Shown here: positions 1-8,483 of the stretch, one piece after another
Layout: each line of letters starts with the position of its first letter
Numbering within the stretch: position 1 is the first letter of the stretch
Source of the DNA: Salpingoeca rosetta
Taxonomy: Eukaryota > Protista > Choanoflagellata
Length of the DNA: 60,257 nt
Assembly: GCA_033442325.1 (NCBI GenBank)
Contig: JAWQFM010000017.1
Location: 1,322,961-1,383,217, forward strand
Direction of reading: 5' to 3'
Translations under genes and position numbers: made by a program
The notes under the pieces: model-generated
Told to the model about the DNA's origin: nothing
Database searches by the model: none
The model's input: the letters and a program-made list of their open reading frames with translations, nothing else

Positions 1-765
1 CCAGACATCTCGGCGGCTGTCTCCATCCTCTCTCGCCGTATGCAGCACTTCGGCATGGACCATTGGAAGGCTGCCAAGCACCTTCTTCGCTACATCAAGG
101 GCACCTTGTCCTACACCATCAAGTACGCCGCCACTGGCGACACCAGCAACGGCAGCACTGCCGACGGCGTGCTCTCAGCGTACTCGGATGCGTCGTTCGC
201 CTCCGACGTTGACACGCGACGTTCCCGCACGGGCTTCGTCGTCTTCTGTTCCACGGGCCCCGTGTCCTGGAACTCCAAGCTGCAGGCCACCGTAGCCACA
301 GCCTCCGCCGACGCGGAGTACATGGCTCTCGCAGCCACCGCACAGGAACTCATGTTCCTTCGCCAACTCCAGGAGGAGCTCACCGGCGCCGTCCTGTGCG
401 AGCCCACGCTCGTCCACACGGACAACCAGCCGGCGCAGCGCGTTGCCGAACACGCCGCCTCGCGCATGCGGCACATCCTCGTCAAGTACCACTACATCCG
501 CGAGTGCGTCGACACAAAGAGGATTGTGCTGAGCTACCTCGCCACGGAGCATATGATCGCAGATCTTCTCACGAAGATCCTCCCTCGGCCCAAGACGGCT
601 CAATTCAGCGCACGCCTCTTCTGCCTTGCAACAGGCAGCAAGAAAGCATCCACATCATCTGGTCTCACACGGGTCGCCGCTCACGCTGCATTCACCAACG
701 ACGTGGCAGCCCCTGACGGTTCACAGGCACCACAGGCCATGTGCCTTACACCAGGCCTCGTCTGA
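1..765 (+). CDS. pol: Copia Pol C-terminus (end of RT + RNase H), 5'-partial
   Basis: Frame open from base 1: PDISAAVSILSR..HWKAAKHLLRYIKGT, YSDASFASDVDTRRSRTG, SWNSKLQATVATASADAEYMAL, TDNQPA, RHILVKYHYIRE, HMIADLLTK; these are typical copia RT-end/RNase H motifs. Confidence 0.95.
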   Translation, partial: PDISAAVSILSRRMQHFGMDHWKAAKHLLRYIKGTLSYTIKYAATGDTSNGSTADGVLSAYSDASFASDVDTRRSRTGFVVFCSTGPVSWNSKLQATVATASADAEYMALAATAQELMFLRQLQEELTGAVLCEPTLVHTDNQPAQRVAEHAASRMRHILVKYHYIRECVDTKRIVLSYLATEHMIADLLTKILPRPKTAQFSARLFCLATGSKKASTSSGLTRVAAHAAFTNDVAAPDGSQAPQAMCLTPGLV

Positions 766-1037
766 CACGCCCTTCCTGTCCGTCATAGGGCCTCTGATCA
801 GCGAGGACCACAGGCACGCCTTCCACGGGCCGGTTCTCTGCGCTGACCGGGCACCACAGGCACCATAGATGATCCTCTTCTGCGACTCTTTCCACGAGCG
901 CCTCATTCATGCAATACTTCTCCTACACTGTGCCTTCCTCAACACGCACGCACCAAGTCACTTCCTACCATGAGCGCGCCCCAACCAACGTCCTCACCAC
1001 AATACACACTACATTTCTTTGAGACTTCTGTTCACGT

Positions 1038-1565
1038 TCAACGACGCTTTACTCGATATGCTGACTCGAGAGTTCCCACACACTCAGACCAATGCAGATC
1101 ATCAAGGGGTGCAACGCCACGGTAACTGTCTAAGATCATGTTGTCACGAATGCATATCACATGGCGCATGTCTAAGTTCTCAGGGGGATGCACAACAAGG
1201 AGCAACATCTGTCGCTGTCGCCCAAGCTTGAACACGGTACGACGAGGTCGGCGCCCACGCACAGCTGTCACCGTGTACGAGTTGGTACTGAGCCACTCCA
1301 GCGGGATGTTGAGTGACCAATTCCCTGGTGCTCTCTTCGGCTTGCCCAAGCCAGCGAGCGACCAACCGTTCCGGCGGTACTGGCGACAATACCGCAGACG
1401 GATTTTCTCAAACGAGGCAGGCGAAGCAACCACGCCCGAAAGCAGGTTGTTCACAGCATGCAATGCGCATCGAGTGCCTACTTGCTTCTGAACTAACCCA
1501 TCACCTGCCCAGGACATCCCCACTGAGGATGGCCGCTTAACGGCGGTTTTCTTGGGATTGCTCAT
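1038..1565 (-). CDS. Josephin-like (MJD family) cysteine protease/deubiquitinase, antisense cargo of the copia element (175 aa from the first ATG; frame open upstream to ~1724)
   Basis: QKQVGTRCALHAVNNLL ... GNWSLNI ... RHVICIR ... ILDS, same order as the Josephin motifs (KQxxxxCALHALNN, GNYDVNV, HWICVR, LDS). Cys codon 1467-1469, His 1161-1163, Asp 1128-1130, all in frame. Confidence 0.8.
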   Translation of the reverse strand: MSNPKKTAVKRPSSVGMSWAGDGLVQKQVGTRCALHAVNNLLSGVVASPASFEKIRLRYCRQYRRNGWSLAGLGKPKRAPGNWSLNIPLEWLSTNSYTVTAVRGRRPRRTVFKLGRQRQMLLLVVHPPENLDMRHVICIRDNMILDSYRGVAPLDDLHWSECVGTLESAYRVKRR

Positions 1566-1882
1566 CTGCGGTTGAGGTGAACTCGCACACACAGCAGCTG
1601 TTCTGCGACGTTTCTTTGTCTTGGCCCACTTGAGCAATTTTCTCACGGATATGGTTTTCGGTTCAGTTTGCACACTTGTGGGTTCTGTCTTTGTACAATT
1701 TTTTGATTCGAATGAATTTTTATTCTATTTCGATTCGATGCACAATTAACGATTTTGTGCCGCCAAACATTTGAATCGAGCATGTCACTGCAAGTCACCA
1801 CAGGTCACTGATGGAGGACTTCACGGGTACTGCACACAGCAGCTCTTCACTGGAGGGACTCGACACCAGCAAGCACGCCACT

Positions 1883-1891
1883 GCGGGGGAG
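1883..1891 (+). promoter_or_regulatory. Polypurine tract of the copia element
   Basis: GCGGGGGAG directly before the TG that starts the 3' LTR. Confidence 0.85.
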
Positions 1892-2232
1892 TGTTGACAT
1901 CACTGTTCCAGTGTCAATGCTTGCTGAGTCAGCAAATTCTGCTGTAAACGTTTCTGTGCACGTGCGCCCAGAAACGGGCGTTTCTGGTTGTTTTGCCACG
2001 TGGCACTTCTCTCTCTCCTCCAGTTTTCTGTCTATGTGTGAGAGTGTCTCTCAGTTCATGTTCATTCATCCTACATCCTTGTTTGCTCCACAACTCAAGT
2101 AAACACACACAACTCTCTCTTGCCAAGACAATCTCCCACACAACACACAGCACACTCTGCACACACAGCACACACAGCACACACACACACACAAGTCTCC
2201 AACAACAGCACCACCAGCATGAACTTACAACA
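1892..2232 (+). repeat. Copia 3' LTR (~341 bp)
   Basis: TGTTG...CAACA inverted termini following the PPT. Other CAACA ends at 2204 and 2207 are possible, but sequence composition changes at 2233. Confidence 0.75.
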
Positions 2233-2654
2233 TCTGTGTCTGTGGTTGTGGTTGCTGCGTCTGTGTCCATGTCTGTGTCTGTGTCAGTGTCGGCGTTTGT
2301 TTGCGCATCTAGGTTTGCCACCGTGGCTAATGCTGTGTGTGCTGCGGCAGTGACTTGATCCATGGTTGCTGAGTCCGACGACTCTGCTGCTGTGTCTGTG
2401 TCCGTGTGCGCGTGTAGGTCTCTGCACGCTGTAGCTGTGTCTGTGTCTGTGTCCGTGTGCGCGTGTAGATCTCTGCACGCTGTGGCTGTGGCTGTGTCTG
2501 TGTCTGTGTGTGTGTCTGGGGTTGTCGCTGTGTCTGTGTCTGTGTCTGTGTCTGTGTGTGTGTCTGGGGTTGTCGTTGTGGTGGGTGGTGGCTCGCGTGG
2601 GGTGGTCCGCTTCAGGAGGGTCGCGAGACCCCTCACTGAAGCGGGCCGTTTCCC
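2233..2654 (-). pseudogene. N-terminal part of the gypsy -1 frame (presumed Pol), low-complexity Asp/Thr/His repeats, truncated by the copia insertion
   Basis: The -1 frame (GKRPASVRGLATLLKR...TDTDTD...) is open from the slippery site to the insertion point; no protease motif is reached before the break. Confidence 0.6.
2592..2654 (-). promoter_or_regulatory. -1 programmed ribosomal frameshift signal (G GGA AAC + stem-loop/pseudoknot)
   Basis: GGGAAAC at 2654-2648 is in the X XXY YYZ register of gag. Perfect 9-bp stem between 2636-2644 and 2607-2615. Confidence 0.8.
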
Positions 2655-3337
2655 GGACACTGAGCATAGCCGTGGCCGGGCTTGCGGCAACGGAAGCAGG
2701 CGCCCTCGGCCATCAGTCGCTGGCGCTCCTCCGGTGTCAGCGGTGGCAGGCGCTTGCGTGGTCCATCGTCACGTCGCGGGGCCTGCTTGTTTGCCTGGTA
2801 CTTGGAGGTGCCGCTTGAAGAGACTGACGTGCGGCGCGCGAAGTGGGTCCCGGATACATCCTTGGCTTGGTCCGCGTCCTCGGCGATCTTCATTGCTTGC
2901 ACCAGGGTCGATGGGCTGGCCACCGATACCACTTGTCGAATCGTCGGGTGGAGTCCCATCAGGTAGAAGGCCAGCAGAAAGACCTCGCTTCGCTCCGACA
3001 GTTGGTCCGCCACGCGGTTGAAGTCTCCGTTGTAGGCTTGAACGTCCTTGGTCTGCCTGATGGCGCGGAGCTCGAAGACCAGCTGTAGTTGTCGAGATGG
3101 GTTGTGGAAGCGGTCGACGATCTTGTTCACGAGGTCGTCCGCCTTGACTGCGGAGTCGCTCATGAACTCCTTGGCGAAGGACTTGGCTCGTCCGTCGAGT
3201 TGCAGGTAGAGGTGGAGCTTCACTTGGCGGGCGTCCATCGTCGCGGAGGCGACCTCCAGGAGGAGCTTGGTATCGTCGGCCCAGTCGTGGACGTCCTCGG
3301 TCTTCGATCCCGAGAACTTGCGAAAAACGAAGTCCAT
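2633..3337 (-). CDS. gag: Ty3/gypsy Gag (capsid-like region + CCHC zinc knuckle), 234 aa
   Basis: MDFVFRKFSGSKTEDVHDW..LDGRAKSF..LRAIRQTKDVQAYNGDF..FYLMGLHPTIR..CFRCRKPGHGYAQCP. Confidence 0.92.
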   Translation of the reverse strand: MDFVFRKFSGSKTEDVHDWADDTKLLLEVASATMDARQVKLHLYLQLDGRAKSFAKEFMSDSAVKADDLVNKIVDRFHNPSRQLQLVFELRAIRQTKDVQAYNGDFNRVADQLSERSEVFLLAFYLMGLHPTIRQVVSVASPSTLVQAMKIAEDADQAKDVSGTHFARRTSVSSSGTSKYQANKQAPRRDDGPRKRLPPLTPEERQRLMAEGACFRCRKPGHGYAQCPGNGPLQ

Positions 3338-3461
3338 CTTGTCGTGTGTCGAAAGGCACGGTTGAGCGAGAAGTTGATGTGGTCGGCTGTGGGTGGGTAT
3401 GTGGTGTGTTGTGGTTTGCAAAGGTAGGGTCTCAATCACTCAATGGTCGGTGGACTTTGTG

Positions 3462-3473
3462 CAATCGCTACCA
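3462..3473 (-). promoter_or_regulatory. Primer-binding site of the gypsy element (TGGTAGCGATTG)
   Basis: Begins with TGG immediately after the LTR-terminal CA. Confidence 0.75.
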
Positions 3474-3881
3474 TGTAAGCTCTTTGGTTGTGTCAGTGTA
3501 CTGTGGTCGATGTCGTGGTCAAACAGTAAAACAAAAGAATGAACAAGACGAACGTGACACTCGCACAAAAGGGCATGAGCGGGTGCACAGAAAGAACAAG
3601 CAGGGAGAAACACGAGTACGAGAGCAAAAGCCGTAGGGGCTTTAGACAAAGGAAAACGAAAACAAAACAAAGGAGGGTTGCCACGTAGCGTGACAACAAA
3701 CAAGCCAAGAGCAAAGGATACTGCTAAGAGCAATGCAACACTGCGGAGCAATGTAATTTGGGATGAGGTGGGAGAAGTGGTGAAAGACATGCGACAAGGC
3801 TCGGTCACGAAAGACGTGTGAAAAGAGTAGTAAAGAAGTGGGACAGAAAAGCACTGTCGACAGAGTCGACAAGTGCTTACA
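3474..3881 (-). repeat. Gypsy 5' LTR (408 bp)
   Basis: Perfect 7-bp inverted termini TGTAAGC...GCTTACA, adjacent to the PBS. Confidence 0.88.
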
Positions 3882-4176: not shown

Positions 4177-4871
4177 TCAGGACGACGAGAGCGGGCGCCA
4201 CAGAGTCGACGTACTGCTGGGCGTTCCGAATGATGGAAACCTGTAGCCCGAACGCAGCAACAACAAATGATGTGAGCAGTGCTCATGCACGATGCAGAGG
4301 AAACTTCGCCCACCAAACACAATCACGCTCTGAAGAGCCGTGCGCACGCGCCGTACCTCCTCTGCAGTGTGCGATCTCTGTCGGTACTGCGCTGCATCAA
4401 TCAAGCTCTTAAGCTTGGCCACCTCATGCTTGTGTTCCATGGTCACTGGGCCTGAAGGCAGTGGTGTTGGGGACAGTGGTGTGTCATATCGCAGTGTGAC
4501 CTTGGCAGGGTGTACCGAGCCCATAGGTACCACTACACACCACCACACCACCACCACCTTTGACACAAAGCATTCATTGGCACCATGCCCCGCCCTTCAC
4601 CCTTCGTCGCACACGCACGTACCAAAAGCCCGCTGGCATATCCGTGTACTCTGCAAGCAGAGAGCAAGGGCACCGGTAAAGTCGTGCGCCACGTCCACAC
4701 CCACGCGGGCCAACTTGTCAAACACACCCTGCCATTAGCAGTGTGCGGCAGGGCGGAATGAAGGGAAGAGGAGAGGACGTGGAGGGAACGTGGATACACA
4801 CGACGGCAAATGGTGAGTGAGGGCCAATTTTGGAGTGCTTGGCAGACACACAGGCAGGCTGGCAGACACAC

Positions 4872-4906
<35 letters not shown>

Positions 4907-6716
4907 TCACACACACAAACATACACGGACACACACACACACACACGCACACACAGACACGGACACACACACACACACACACGCACACAGACAAACACAT
5001 AGACACAGACACACAGACACACAGACAGACACACAGATACGCAGACAGACACATGACTGGTGTACCGCGGCGATGGTGCAGGTTGGGGCAAGGTGGGATG
5101 CAAGGCACTCGGCGTGGTGAATGGCGGCACAGCGGACGTCGTGGGAAAGGAGGTTGCCCGTGAGGGCAGAGGAGAGGTGGTGTAGGCACGTGGACAACTC
5201 ATCACGCAAATCGCAGCCGCACGGCAGCAGCGGGCCACTGTCATCGGACGCTGCCACCACCCGCACAACCACCTTGCCATCACCACCCTGATCACCACCC
5301 TGATCATCACCGTCACCGCCTTGATCGGCATCAGCTGCAGGCACGACGGCCAGCACCTTGAAGCCGCCACCTTCACTGCGGTCGCCGCTGCTGATGAGGA
5401 GTGCACGAAGGAGAACAGAGCGGAGGGAGGTCAGGTTGACAGCACCGGCGACCTCGGCCCATCCATATGCGGTTGCGCATCTTCGGCACCGCAGCGCCAC
5501 TGGACGGCATTCCAGCAGCGACGGAAGGGGAGCGCGAAGCGTAGAAGATGTGGTGGTGGTGTTGGTGGAGGAGGAGGAGGGTGTGGTGGCAGGTGCCGGC
5601 GGCTGCCGCGGTTGCCCTTCATCATCACCGTCATCATCATCATCATCATCGTCATCATCAGCAGCATCATCGTCAGGGTTGTCATGGCAGCTGTCCGCAG
5701 CATGGGCAGCAGTGGCGCCGGGCCGGGGAGTGGTGTCAAGGGCCATCACGTCGGCTTCGAGTTTGCAGGTTGCGCATGCGCATTCAAACCCAAACTGTTG
5801 CAGACACGCGCGCCGCCGCTCAACAACCGGCGACACACACGCCAGTGGACCATACGAGATGCACACGCCCACGGGCGTCGTTGCTGCTGTTGGTGCTGTG
5901 TGGGCGGGGGCGATGGGACGGGCGGCGATGACGCGGAGGGAGCGACCAGCAAACGATTGCATTGCGTTTGGCCGGCAGTCGTGGTTGAACACACTCGAGC
6001 GCAGGAAAAGCGCACGCGCAACGCTGCTGTGCTGCACTTCCTCTGTACCTGCTCCGCCTTCACCACCGCCACGGTCGTCTTTATTGTTGGTGTCATGAGT
6101 ATCGTCACCTCGTTTGTCGTGCTGGCCACGCTGGGCCACCACCAACCGCTTGTCGCTCAACAGCGGGTGGGCGAAACCAGGAAGGACCGGCACTGTCTTG
6201 TCGCTGCTTGATTTGCTGCGTTTTCTCACCATCGTCGCTGTCGTTGATGCTGTTGTTGTCGGCGTTGTTGTGGGGACTGAGAAGCTGTTGCAGCGCAGCA
6301 CACCAATGACGTGGCATAGCACCAGCAGCTGCTGTCGATCATCACCATCACCGTCACCGTCATTGTCATCCACATCATCACTATCATAATTGTCATCATC
6401 AGCGTCAGCATTATCACTGTCATCACCATGCTTCGGCCACTGCGTTGCAGTGTGATACAAAGAGCAGCCATCGCCGCCTGCACACCCATGCCACGCCTGC
6501 CACTCGCGTGTGTTCTGCACGGCAGCAGCAGCCGCTTTGCGAACGGCGTCCACGCCGAGTGCTGTGCGCAGCAGTGGGAGCAGGCTGCTCATATCGGCCA
6601 ACGCTCGATGGTGGTGGTGGTGGTGGCTGGGGCGCGTGTCGGCGTCGACATCAGTGCCGTGCGTGTGTGCCCCATCGGAGCAGTGCGACTGCAGCCGCCA
6701 GAATCGCTCTTGTGCC

Positions 6717-6800
<84 letters not shown>

Positions 6801-7061
6801 GGGTAGAGGGACGCGAGGGTGACGGCAGCGTGGAGAACTTGCAGGTGGCGGTCGTCTGCTGGTGGCGACGAGAGATGTGAGAGCTCCTCCTCCACGGAGA
6901 GCACCTGCAACGATGGCAGTGGTGGTGGCGGCAGTGGTGAGCTGATGACGATGTTGTGTTCTCAAGCGCGTAAATTTGCAAGCAAGCAAGCAAGCACACA
7001 CAGCAACACACACACACACACACACACACCCACCCACCCACCCACACACCCACACACCCAC

Positions 7062-7110
<49 letters not shown>

Positions 7111-8483
7111 TACATGCTGCGCAGCTGTGCGACAGCGTCGCGAGCAGAGGAAGGCGACTGCAGGTCGGCCGATGGGAAACAGGCACACGCGCCGCCGCCA
7201 GCACCACATGCACCGCCCCGCTCGCTCCTCCGGCCTGTGTGTATGTACGTGTGTAAGAGAGAGTGTGTAGCGTGCAGAGTGTGTTTGGAGTGTGAAGTGT
7301 GTGTATGTGGAGTGTGTTTGGAGTGTTGAGGGTGTGTTGAGGGTGTGTATGTGCAGATCATCGGCATGTGTTGCCAAGGGGTCAATCGTACATGTGCACA
7401 CGACGCAAGGCATGCGCACAACATGTTGACCAACTTGAGTACGCCACTGAAGGCTTGTTCTTGCACGAGGAGGGTGCCTGCGTCCAAGCGCTCCACGGTC
7501 TATGTGTTGGTGTTTGGATATGATACATACGTCAGCGTAGAACAGATGGTGTGAGCGCATGAGCAAACAAACAGGTCATAGGTCGACGGACAGGTGTGCT
7601 GCATGCACACCCTCTCGTCAGTCAGCGTGCACATTTTCCTTGCACCTGGTATCCGCGACCGATGTGTTTGTCGTGGACTGGTGATACGCTGATGGCAGCA
7701 TGCACGACATCATCATCTTCGATGCTTTTGGAGGCGTGGGTGCGTTGTGACTTGCGTCGGTGTTGGACCAGCCGCTTCTTTGCTTCCTTCTCACGAAACT
7801 CCAGCTTCTTTTGCTGTGTCTCCGTCAGCCTGTCGATTATATAAGTTGTGTGTGTGTTCGAGTGCGGGCAAGCGTTTGTGCACGTGTGTGCGTGTGTGTG
7901 TGTGTGCGGGTGTGAGCATTGAAACGAGCAAATCCAACACCCCCCCCCACACACACACATAGGGGTGCTGGTGCTTCTGAGTACCTGTCGCGAAGGGACG
8001 GCGTTGTGTTGAGCTGCGCAAGGTCTTCATGCGCGTTTGTCAGCAAGTACGCGAAATCCTGAGTCGTTGGCTCTGCTTCTGCATGAGATGTTGCTGGCGC
8101 GATCGTTGGCGCCGTGGCTACAGCTGTGTCCCAGAGCTTGAGCATTGCCCATGAGCGGTTGAGCAAAGCCAGCGCCACGCATTGTTGCTGATCTTGCTTG
8201 TGTGTGCCACCCCCGAGGTCTCGGATGGCCTGACACGGGGTGTGTGTGTGTGTGATGAATAACGATGTCAGTAAGTGGAAGAAGAAGGAGGAAGAGAAGA
8301 AGCAGGAAGAGAAACAGGCAAGTAAAGCGATCGGAGCACAAGTGAATCACTTGCAGCCACGAAGACACAAACACAGGCACATAATGTACAAAGACATTCA
8401 CACACACACTGTCACACACACACACTGTCTCATCCACACACACTGTCTCATCCACACACACACACACACACACACCGTCTCAT

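Follow-up and report, generated by a model that had tools for sequence, protein, structure and literature searches.

The antisense gene and its carrier element

The window analysed here is a 60,257-nucleotide stretch of the Salpingoeca rosetta genome (contig JAWQFM010000017.1), which opens inside the 3' part of a Ty1/copia-type long terminal repeat (LTR) retrotransposon belonging to the Srospv3 family. Between the end of the pol gene of this element and its 3' LTR, on the opposite strand, lies a small intronless gene whose product resembles the Josephin group of papain-fold cysteine proteases (Table 1). Its open reading frame (ORF) runs from an ATG at 1565 to a stop at 1038 and encodes 175 amino acids plus the stop; the minus-strand open frame as a whole spans 1038..1673, or 211 amino acids when counted from a GTG, and the ATG is favoured over this upstream GTG because the 5' ends of an antisense RNA, described below, fall at 1586-1609. 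From the N- to the C-terminus the protein carries the motifs QKQVGTRCALHAVNNLL, GNWSLNI, HVICIR and ILDS, and it is very basic, with 30 lysine and arginine residues among its 175 and a pI of 10.9. An earlier note on this DNA, made from the sequence alone, had described an intact minus-strand ORF with motifs in Josephin order and a Lys/Arg-rich product, and the ORF listing, the translation and the residue composition agree with it on each count.

Table 1. Features of the element and of its antisense gene; positions are those of the window except for the active-site residues, which are numbered along the 175-residue protein
Feature	Position	Strand	Evidence
Josephin-like cysteine protease gene	1038..1565	-	ORF, homologues, purifying selection, profile and fold matches, invariant residues
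Putative active-site residues of the 175-residue protein	oxyanion Gln26/Gln28, catalytic Cys33, His135, Asp146		invariance in relatives
Antisense transcript with the ORF	1029..1609	-	5' ends at ~1586-1609, poly(A)-type end at ~1029, stranded RNA-seq
Minor internal poly(A) site of sense transcripts	1022	+	A-run loose ends: run X19 5 reads, run X20 14 reads
Conserved non-coding motif, core ACCCACAAGTGTGCAAAC at 1666-1683 (candidate promoter element)	1666..1685	-	near-invariant across five elements
Copia Gag-Pol, C-terminal part (RNase H region and tail), stop at 763-765	1..765	+	open from window start; Srospv3 match; PR-IN-RT order of relatives
Variant 3' module: distinct pol tail, antisense gene, polypurine tract, U3 of LTR	607..2058	+	canonical copies match only 1-606 and 2059-2232
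Polypurine tract region (…GCGGGGGAG), adjoining the 3' LTR	1881..1891	+	sequence; conserved in diverged relatives
3' LTR, 341 bp, TG…CA; U3 ~1892-2058 (variant-specific); sense poly(A) ~2117	1892..2232	+	loose ends; LTR pair of the C4 copy

In this genome ORF length alone is weak evidence for a gene because of homopolymeric runs and long spurious ORFs on several frames. Within the window, TG/CA-type microsatellites are dense at 2100-2600, 4700-5200 and 6900-7300 and are accompanied by long spurious ORFs in several frames, the large ORFs of these repeat-dense stretches carrying long homopolymeric runs of Ser, Asp and His.

The limits of the LTR were established from loose ends of RNA reads and contigs, whose flanks vary ahead of 1892 and past 2232, and the two LTRs of the copy on contig C4 agree with them. 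A polypurine tract (PPT)-like GGGGGAG ends at 1891, the LTR begins with TG at 1892 and ends with CA at 2232, and an A-run behind 2117 marks the sense poly(A) site within the LTR; the PPT and the start of the LTR are 91-93% identical in diverged relatives. As the pol stop and the LTR bracket the ORF, it lies inside the LTR-bounded element. This is where the earlier note had placed it, between the pol stop at 765 and a PPT at 1883, and only the PPT/LTR boundary moves by a few bases, to 1891/1892.

The carrier has the features of Ty1/copia elements, namely the order Pol_BBD, rve, SH3_retrovirus and RVT_2 in the relative L014, a TG…CA LTR and GGGGGAG before that LTR, and it is a rare gene-bearing subfamily of the copia-like Srospv3 family described by Southworth et al. 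2019 (PMC6875170). Up to ...KTAQF the pol residues of the window hardly differ from those published for Srospv3, and the R/U5 part of the LTR is likewise near-identical; the 18-mer with which the window LTR starts is found 40 times in the copia LTR alignment file of that paper. In contrast, the published consensus is 5680 bp long, has another pol tail and carries 'gag+pol' only, whereas the gene-bearing variant is rare and measures ~6.4 kb. Srospv3 is described there without any antisense or additional ORF, and the peptide CALHAVNNLL is absent from all of its supplementary files.

Canonical Srospv3 copies, of which the genome holds at least 25, match the window solely at 1-606 and 2059-2232. 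By comparison, window positions 607-1040 are present at just three readable places in the genome, and the variant U3 occurs in ~20 copies. The 3' module measures ~600 bp in canonical copies versus ~1450 bp in the window, with both pol tail and U3 replaced (e.g. L039:1808-2411 and L041). Past ...KTAQF, the pol tails of L014 and L016 are orthologues of the window tail, but not of the canonical Srospv3 tail. Because the window tail is also that of diverged marine relatives, the gene-bearing architecture looks ancestral rather than newly acquired within this lineage, and the abundant, high-copy Srospv3 form would be derived and have lost the gene. An origin of the gene by capture, as the earlier note proposed, is conceivable.

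The ORF region is present in about six copies, comprising that of the window (C17), those on C23, C25, C4 and C12, and a trace at C8. Conservation across genomic copies, which had been suggested as a check, is seen in the C23 copy, intact with a single Pro-to-Leu change, and in the C25 copy, which is in frame as far as it can be read, with an in-frame extra Lys and its end masked by N. The C4 copy has frame shifts near the N-terminus beside an N run and an open catalytic domain, and the C12 copy is interrupted by a 100-N gap. The C4 element (C4:1448963-1455396) measures 6434 bp from LTR to LTR, with LTRs 99.4% alike, the ORF enclosed and N runs inside. Its 5-bp flanks (GTCAC / CTAAA) differ and provide no matching target-site duplication; copies may have recombined, the insertion may be nested or in tandem, or the assembly may be faulty here. 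A host gene interrupted by the element was considered and rejected, since the ORF recurs in at least five copies and in diverged relatives at the same position.

Selection, linkage to retroelements and antisense transcription

A search of 5.8 billion proteins returned five homologues with 62-80% identity, encoded on contigs from ENA and Logan assemblies that include a Tara Oceans marine metagenome. The dN/dS ratio of these homologues against the window gene, named in the earlier note as a check, is 0.13-0.27 at dS 0.33-1.0 (Nei-Gojobori, NG86), and is not near 1. In a six-frame control over a gapless 306-nt block of five sequences, the annotated frame alone is open in all, each of the five other frames being closed by stops in four or all of the sequences. 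Its pN/pS of 0.12-0.33 is also the lowest of the six; pN/pS exceeds 1 in four other frames, and the mirror frame (0.22-0.47) displays the expected echo. This control rejects a chance ORF or an antisense shadow of another gene. As judged from these sequence comparisons, purifying selection has preserved the gene during its passage with the lineage of the element.

The genomic surroundings of the homologues link them to retroelements. At loci L014-L021 the homologue is antisense, and its 3' end faces that of a preceding copia pol, which carries Pol_BBD, rve, SH3_retrovirus and RVT_2. ORF identity follows that of the pol C-terminus, at 75-77% where pol is 67-68% identical and 62% where pol is 51-54% identical, which points to long co-transmission and to a constraint on the accessory protein no weaker than that on this part of pol. 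At two of these loci (L015:1-840 and L014:2-751) a gag-like ORF in the orientation of pol comes after the LTR, with a weak Retrotran_gag_2 match in L015, as expected if assemblers collapsed two LTRs into a circularly permuted contig.

Twelve proteins emerged from an exhaustive profile search of 1.84 billion representatives. Among these, P0006, P0008 and P0009 (42%, 32% and 29% identical to the window protein) are encoded tail-to-tail after a pol ending in Integrase_H2C2, rve, SH3_Tf2-1 and Chromo (E 2e-18 to 5e-14); because of these integrase, SH3_Tf2-1 and chromodomain ends we assign the pols to Ty3/gypsy chromoviruses, on contigs so short that the LTRs lie beyond their reach. In a tree of 14 members the copia-linked genes form one clade (90/99) with the chromovirus-linked P0006 as its sister (80/83), the only groupings that this tree resolves. 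An additional scan of metagenome contigs added only two more short loci, and a profile search of the genome found no further paralogue besides the Josephin exon of the host itself. A cluster in a language-model search had suggested a link to giant viruses, which is unsupported, as a viral-contig scan seeded with one locus group found no relative.

Three stranded RNA-seq runs from 2026 with the same species label (X19, X20 and X21) were mapped to window positions 1-3600. Over pol the libraries are more than 99% strand-specific, with the first mate on the minus strand at a depth of 34-455 versus mostly 0-4 for the opposite class. Reads of this opposite class, with the first mate on the plus strand, are restricted to ~1030-1610 and fall to near zero on either side. 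Between ~1081 and 1560 the antisense depth is 55-163 in X19 and 104-277 in X21, with sense depths of 17-54 and 8-42, respectively, and in X20 it is 4-12 with a sense depth of 117-192; X20 thus combines the highest sense signal of the three runs with the lowest antisense signal, antisense RNA being abundant in the two lowest-sense runs. Molecule ends at 1586, 1604 and 1609 represent the 5' end of the antisense RNA, ~40 nt upstream of the ATG, and a loose end with a T-run, ahead of 1029, indicates a poly(A) tail ~9 nt past the stop codon. A discrete antisense polyadenylated RNA covers exactly the ORF, and the separate transcription that the earlier note had proposed, with stranded RNA-seq as the check, is borne out. 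Variants at 1398, 1555 and 1571 are confined to antisense-class reads and equal the C23 copy, and RNA reads also show a triplet insertion like that of the C25 copy, indicating that at least two copies are transcribed.

The poly(A)-type ends of sense and antisense RNAs face each other at 1022 and 1029, ~7 nt apart, which implies that a minority of sense RNAs stop before the antisense gene, without the 3' R region. Beyond the 5' side of the gene the spacer contains two conserved islands only, the PPT with the LTR start and the motif with core ACCCACAAGTGTGCAAAC. The latter is conserved within a spacer that is otherwise unalignable, including in the relative whose protein is 62% identical. The antisense RNA starts ~60-80 nt downstream of this motif, which is a candidate promoter element of the antisense gene. 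Next to it, at ~1690-1770, lies an unusually A+T-rich stretch.

Sequence profiles and predicted structure of the protein

A profile of 14 family sequences matched JOSD2 (E=1.7e-5), ataxin-3 (1.3e-4) and ATXN3L (8.6e-4) in the PDB and nothing else below E=0.9, and a nine-sequence profile from which all Pfam-passing members had been excluded still matched JOSD2 at 2.1e-3. A profile of distant members aligns through the G-x-W-S block onto ataxin-3. Two relatives, P0014 and P0010, score 43.6 and 26.1 bits on the Pfam Josephin model (PF02099), both above its cut-off of 26, and the profile search that ties them to the window protein gave E-values of 2.2e-4 and 3.3e-13, respectively; a homologue search with P0014 as query returned only P0014 itself. 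The profile aligns QKQvgtrCALHAVNNLL of the window protein to ERQRLELCAVHALNNVL of JOSD2 and EKQEGSLCAQHCLNNLL of ataxin-3, so that the Gln…Cys motif of Josephins, homologous to Q9/C14 of ataxin-3 and to the Cys of JOSD2, is in place. When the window protein is searched as a single sequence, its Pfam match is Josephin only (residues 68-91 of the 211-residue form) and its phmmer match in the PDB is ataxin-3 (E=0.14), each covering the Cys motif only. The language-model search returned C39, Josephin and IpaJ clusters, at ~0.89-0.90.

All nine of the closest members share Gln26, Gln28, Cys33, His135 and Asp146 without exception, and all 14 sequences share His135 and Asp146, in keeping with the intact oxyanion Gln and Cys-His-Asp triad read from the sequence beforehand. 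The family profile also finds the first exon of a host Josephin gene at C35:230393-230527 (E=2.9e-6), the same exon that the Pfam model finds. This exon (L036/L077) reads …YFETQRRQQCALHATNNFLQ… and is followed by a TG-repeat-rich, intron-like break; the remaining host Josephin exons were not found by a six-frame search.

An AlphaFold2 model based on the 14-sequence alignment reached a pLDDT of 85.3 and a pTM of 0.80 and supersedes an earlier model from six close sequences, which was unusable (pLDDT 37.5). A helix predicted at residues 33-41 begins at Cys33, and His135 and Asp146 are positioned on adjacent predicted strands, in a region covered by the structural alignment of model residues 19-175 with ATXN3L 1-169 and without a significant HMMER alignment. 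Foldseek ranks 1-10 are all Josephins (E 4.7e-6 to 4.3e-4, TM ~0.5). By VIA-align the best match is ATXN3L with a Z of 13.1 (142 aligned residues, rmsd 3.6, 20% identity), followed by JOSD2 at 11.9 (23% identity), BpJOS at 11.4 and ataxin-3 at 11.2. Co-folding with host ubiquitin gave a score of 0.01 with the alignment unused, and speaks neither for nor against an interaction. The assignment to the Josephin family made in the earlier note, with AlphaFold and Foldseek among its checks, is upheld by family profiles that match only Josephin structures, by distant members that pass the Pfam cut-off and by a Josephin as the best match of the predicted fold. On this profile and model evidence, the protein belongs, as a divergent member, to the Josephin group of papain-fold cysteine proteases, with a modest structural margin over other papain-like folds.

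Proposed function, alternatives and known systems

We conclude, with a probability of roughly 0.75, that the window contains a real accessory gene of the gene-bearing Srospv3 subfamily, which encodes a divergent Josephin-group protease, has its own antisense transcript and is under purifying selection. Several observations weigh against this conclusion. The window protein alone scores 11.9 bits (E=0.21) on the Pfam Josephin model, below the cut-off, so that of the match to this model envisaged in the earlier note only that of the relatives P0014 and P0010 materialized. Significant sequence alignments lie mainly over the N-terminal Cys-helix region, and the alignment given to AlphaFold2 includes Pfam-level Josephins. 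C39 peptidases, PeiR and staphopain reach Z-scores of up to 10.7, only ~2-3 below the Josephins, at ~10% identity. Copies within the genome are 98-100% alike, selection being seen only between elements of different hosts. Finally, most Srospv3 copies are without the gene, which is therefore not essential in cis.

The invariant Gln, Cys, His and Asp residues suggest that the protein is a catalytically active thiol protease. It may cut after the C-terminus of ubiquitin or a ubiquitin-like protein, either as a conventional deubiquitinase or in the manner of a bacterial-type 'clippase'. Such an enzyme could act in trans for the element, for example by shielding Gag, Pol or integrase from ubiquitin-dependent removal, or, alternatively, by erasing a ubiquitin mark used in silencing. 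As the product is separate and would be trans-acting, it could conceivably also serve the far more numerous gene-less Srospv3 copies. The excess of gene-less over gene-bearing copies and the inverse variation of antisense and sense levels fit a trans-acting helper or regulator, and do not prove one. S. rosetta LTR elements carry H3K27me3, and Srospv2/3 are among the less expressed families (PMC12572184); given this mark, a chromatin target is conceivable as a matter of speculation. A much broader scenario, which we consider unlikely, is that antisense Josephin-type ubiquitin proteases constitute a shared, exchangeable counter-defence module of copia and chromovirus elements in choanoflagellates and marine protists, in which a basic, possibly nuclear enzyme would strip a host ubiquitin mark, such as a histone ubiquitin linked to Polycomb-type H3K27me3, and help gene-less copies in trans.

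Other readings of the same gene differ in the substrate, in the molecule that acts or in catalysis. An active papain-fold protease might not be directed at ubiquitin at all, but be a C39-like double-glycine peptidase or other endopeptidase acting on an element or host protein, or be specific for another ubiquitin-like protein. C39 domains, PeiR and staphopains align nearly as well as Josephins (Z 10-10.7 versus 11-13), the language-model search places C39 and IpaJ clusters beside Josephin at ~0.89-0.90, and bacterial Josephin relatives display a shifted cleavage position (bioRxiv 10.1101/2024.07.24.604956). Against this, every significant profile match is to Josephin, with C39 and the other clans absent, structurally aligned residues are 20-23% identical in Josephins versus ~10% in C39, and family members exceed the Pfam Josephin cut-off, so that we regard a protease of this kind as decidedly unlikely.

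If the antisense RNA itself were the main function, it would interfere with or terminate the sense genomic RNA and control copy number, the protein being secondary. Such a role would fit the inverse antisense and sense levels between runs and the facing poly(A) sites at 1022 and 1029, but strong purifying selection acts on the protein frame only, the catalytic residues are invariant over 29-80% identity, and conservation of the protein exceeds that of the adjoining pol C-terminus; we hold this to be quite improbable as the main function, while RNA and protein roles are not mutually exclusive. It would surprise us most if the protein were a catalytically dead Josephin-like fold serving as a ubiquitin- or nucleic-acid-binding adaptor. 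A pI of 10.9 and basic loops would suit that role. Pseudo-enzymes, however, usually lose catalytic residues, and here Gln, Cys, His and Asp are invariant in nine close members and His and Asp in 14.

OTU and Ulp1 proteases occur in other transposon classes. As in the present case, protease-like domains directed at ubiquitin or ubiquitin-like proteins have there been recruited by mobile elements, but they belong to other protease families, mostly form part of the transposition protein itself and are not known from LTR retrotransposons; Ulp1-like domains, for example, are present in NeSL/Utopia (PMC4640811). The closest parallel in retroelements is the Josephin-like protease of Dualen/RandI non-LTR elements, named in the earlier note and documented by Kojima & Fujiwara 2005 as cited in PMC8557442 and by the drawing of this domain as 'JCP' in PMC9977147. 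N-terminal Josephin domains have also been described on ORF2p (PMC13405545), and a weakly documented Josephin-like protease domain is fused in the sense polyprotein of a Chlamys Penelope-like element. With Dualen/RandI the S. rosetta element shares a retroelement-borne Josephin-like papain-fold protease proposed to interfere with protein degradation. In Dualen/RandI, however, the domain is fused in frame in the sense polyprotein of a non-LTR element of green algae. The LTR elements described here encode the protease in a stand-alone antisense gene that is transcribed by itself.

Among proteins of known fold, the eukaryotic Josephins (JOSD1/2, ataxin-3 and ATXN3L; PF02099, MEROPS C86) provide the best profile and structural matches, have a similar single-domain size and share, in the same order, Q-x-x-x-x-C-A-x-H-A-x-N-N-L-L, a G-x-[WF]-S block and a His…Asp pair. 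Their identity to the element protein is only 20-23%, and the latter differs in its shorter His-Asp hairpin (11 residues) and its strongly basic character. The bacterial BpJOS, PaJOS and PcJOS (bioRxiv 10.1101/2024.07.24.604956) likewise employ the Josephin fold, as a parasite's or pathogen's means against host ubiquitin, and align with Z 10.2-11.4, but these are secreted effectors with extra N-terminal helices and 14-15% identity. Eukaryotic Josephins are conventional deubiquitinases, and some bacterial relatives 'clip' ubiquitin (10.1101/2024.07.24.604956). The host Josephin gene at C35 is split by an intron, whereas the element gene is intronless and borne by a transposable element.

Bdelloid rotifer LTR elements, whose ORF3s (PMC5408684) likewise form an extra gene between pol and the 3' LTR, also illustrate cargo common to unrelated retroelement lineages. 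The rotifer ORF3s differ in lying on the sense strand and in encoding a GDSL lipase, a DEDDy exonuclease or an env-like protein, with no protease, Josephin or deubiquitinase among them. An additional gene between pol and the 3' LTR is also known from plants, where some Ty3/gypsy elements carry antisense ORFs for which no enzyme fold is known. A whole-word literature search, with most subscription journals outside its scope, found no report of Josephin or deubiquitinase cargo in LTR retrotransposons, consistent with the earlier statement that none was known in copia elements. The gene described here is a known theme, ubiquitin- or ubiquitin-like-protease cargo, in a new element class and a new format, namely a free-standing antisense gene common to copia elements and chromoviruses.

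It is as a separate, small, selected protease gene with its own antisense transcript in two LTR superfamilies that this case is set apart from Ulp1, OTU and Dualen cargo. S. rosetta is a genetically tractable close relative of animals with public RNA-seq and chromatin maps, and because the gene is separate and selected in a tractable host, the question of why retroelements carry deubiquitinase-like enzymes becomes directly testable. With the published Srospv3 consensus representing the derived gene-less form, gene-bearing and gene-less subfamilies within one genome offer a ready-made comparison.

Just beyond the copia LTR, on the minus strand at 2633-3439, the window also contains a 268-residue ORF with Ty3 capsid and Retrotrans_gag domains (E=2e-14 and 2e-8) and a CCHC knuckle. 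RNA depth over this ORF is near zero. The ORF could be what is left of a gypsy-type element, or else a gag-like gene on its own.

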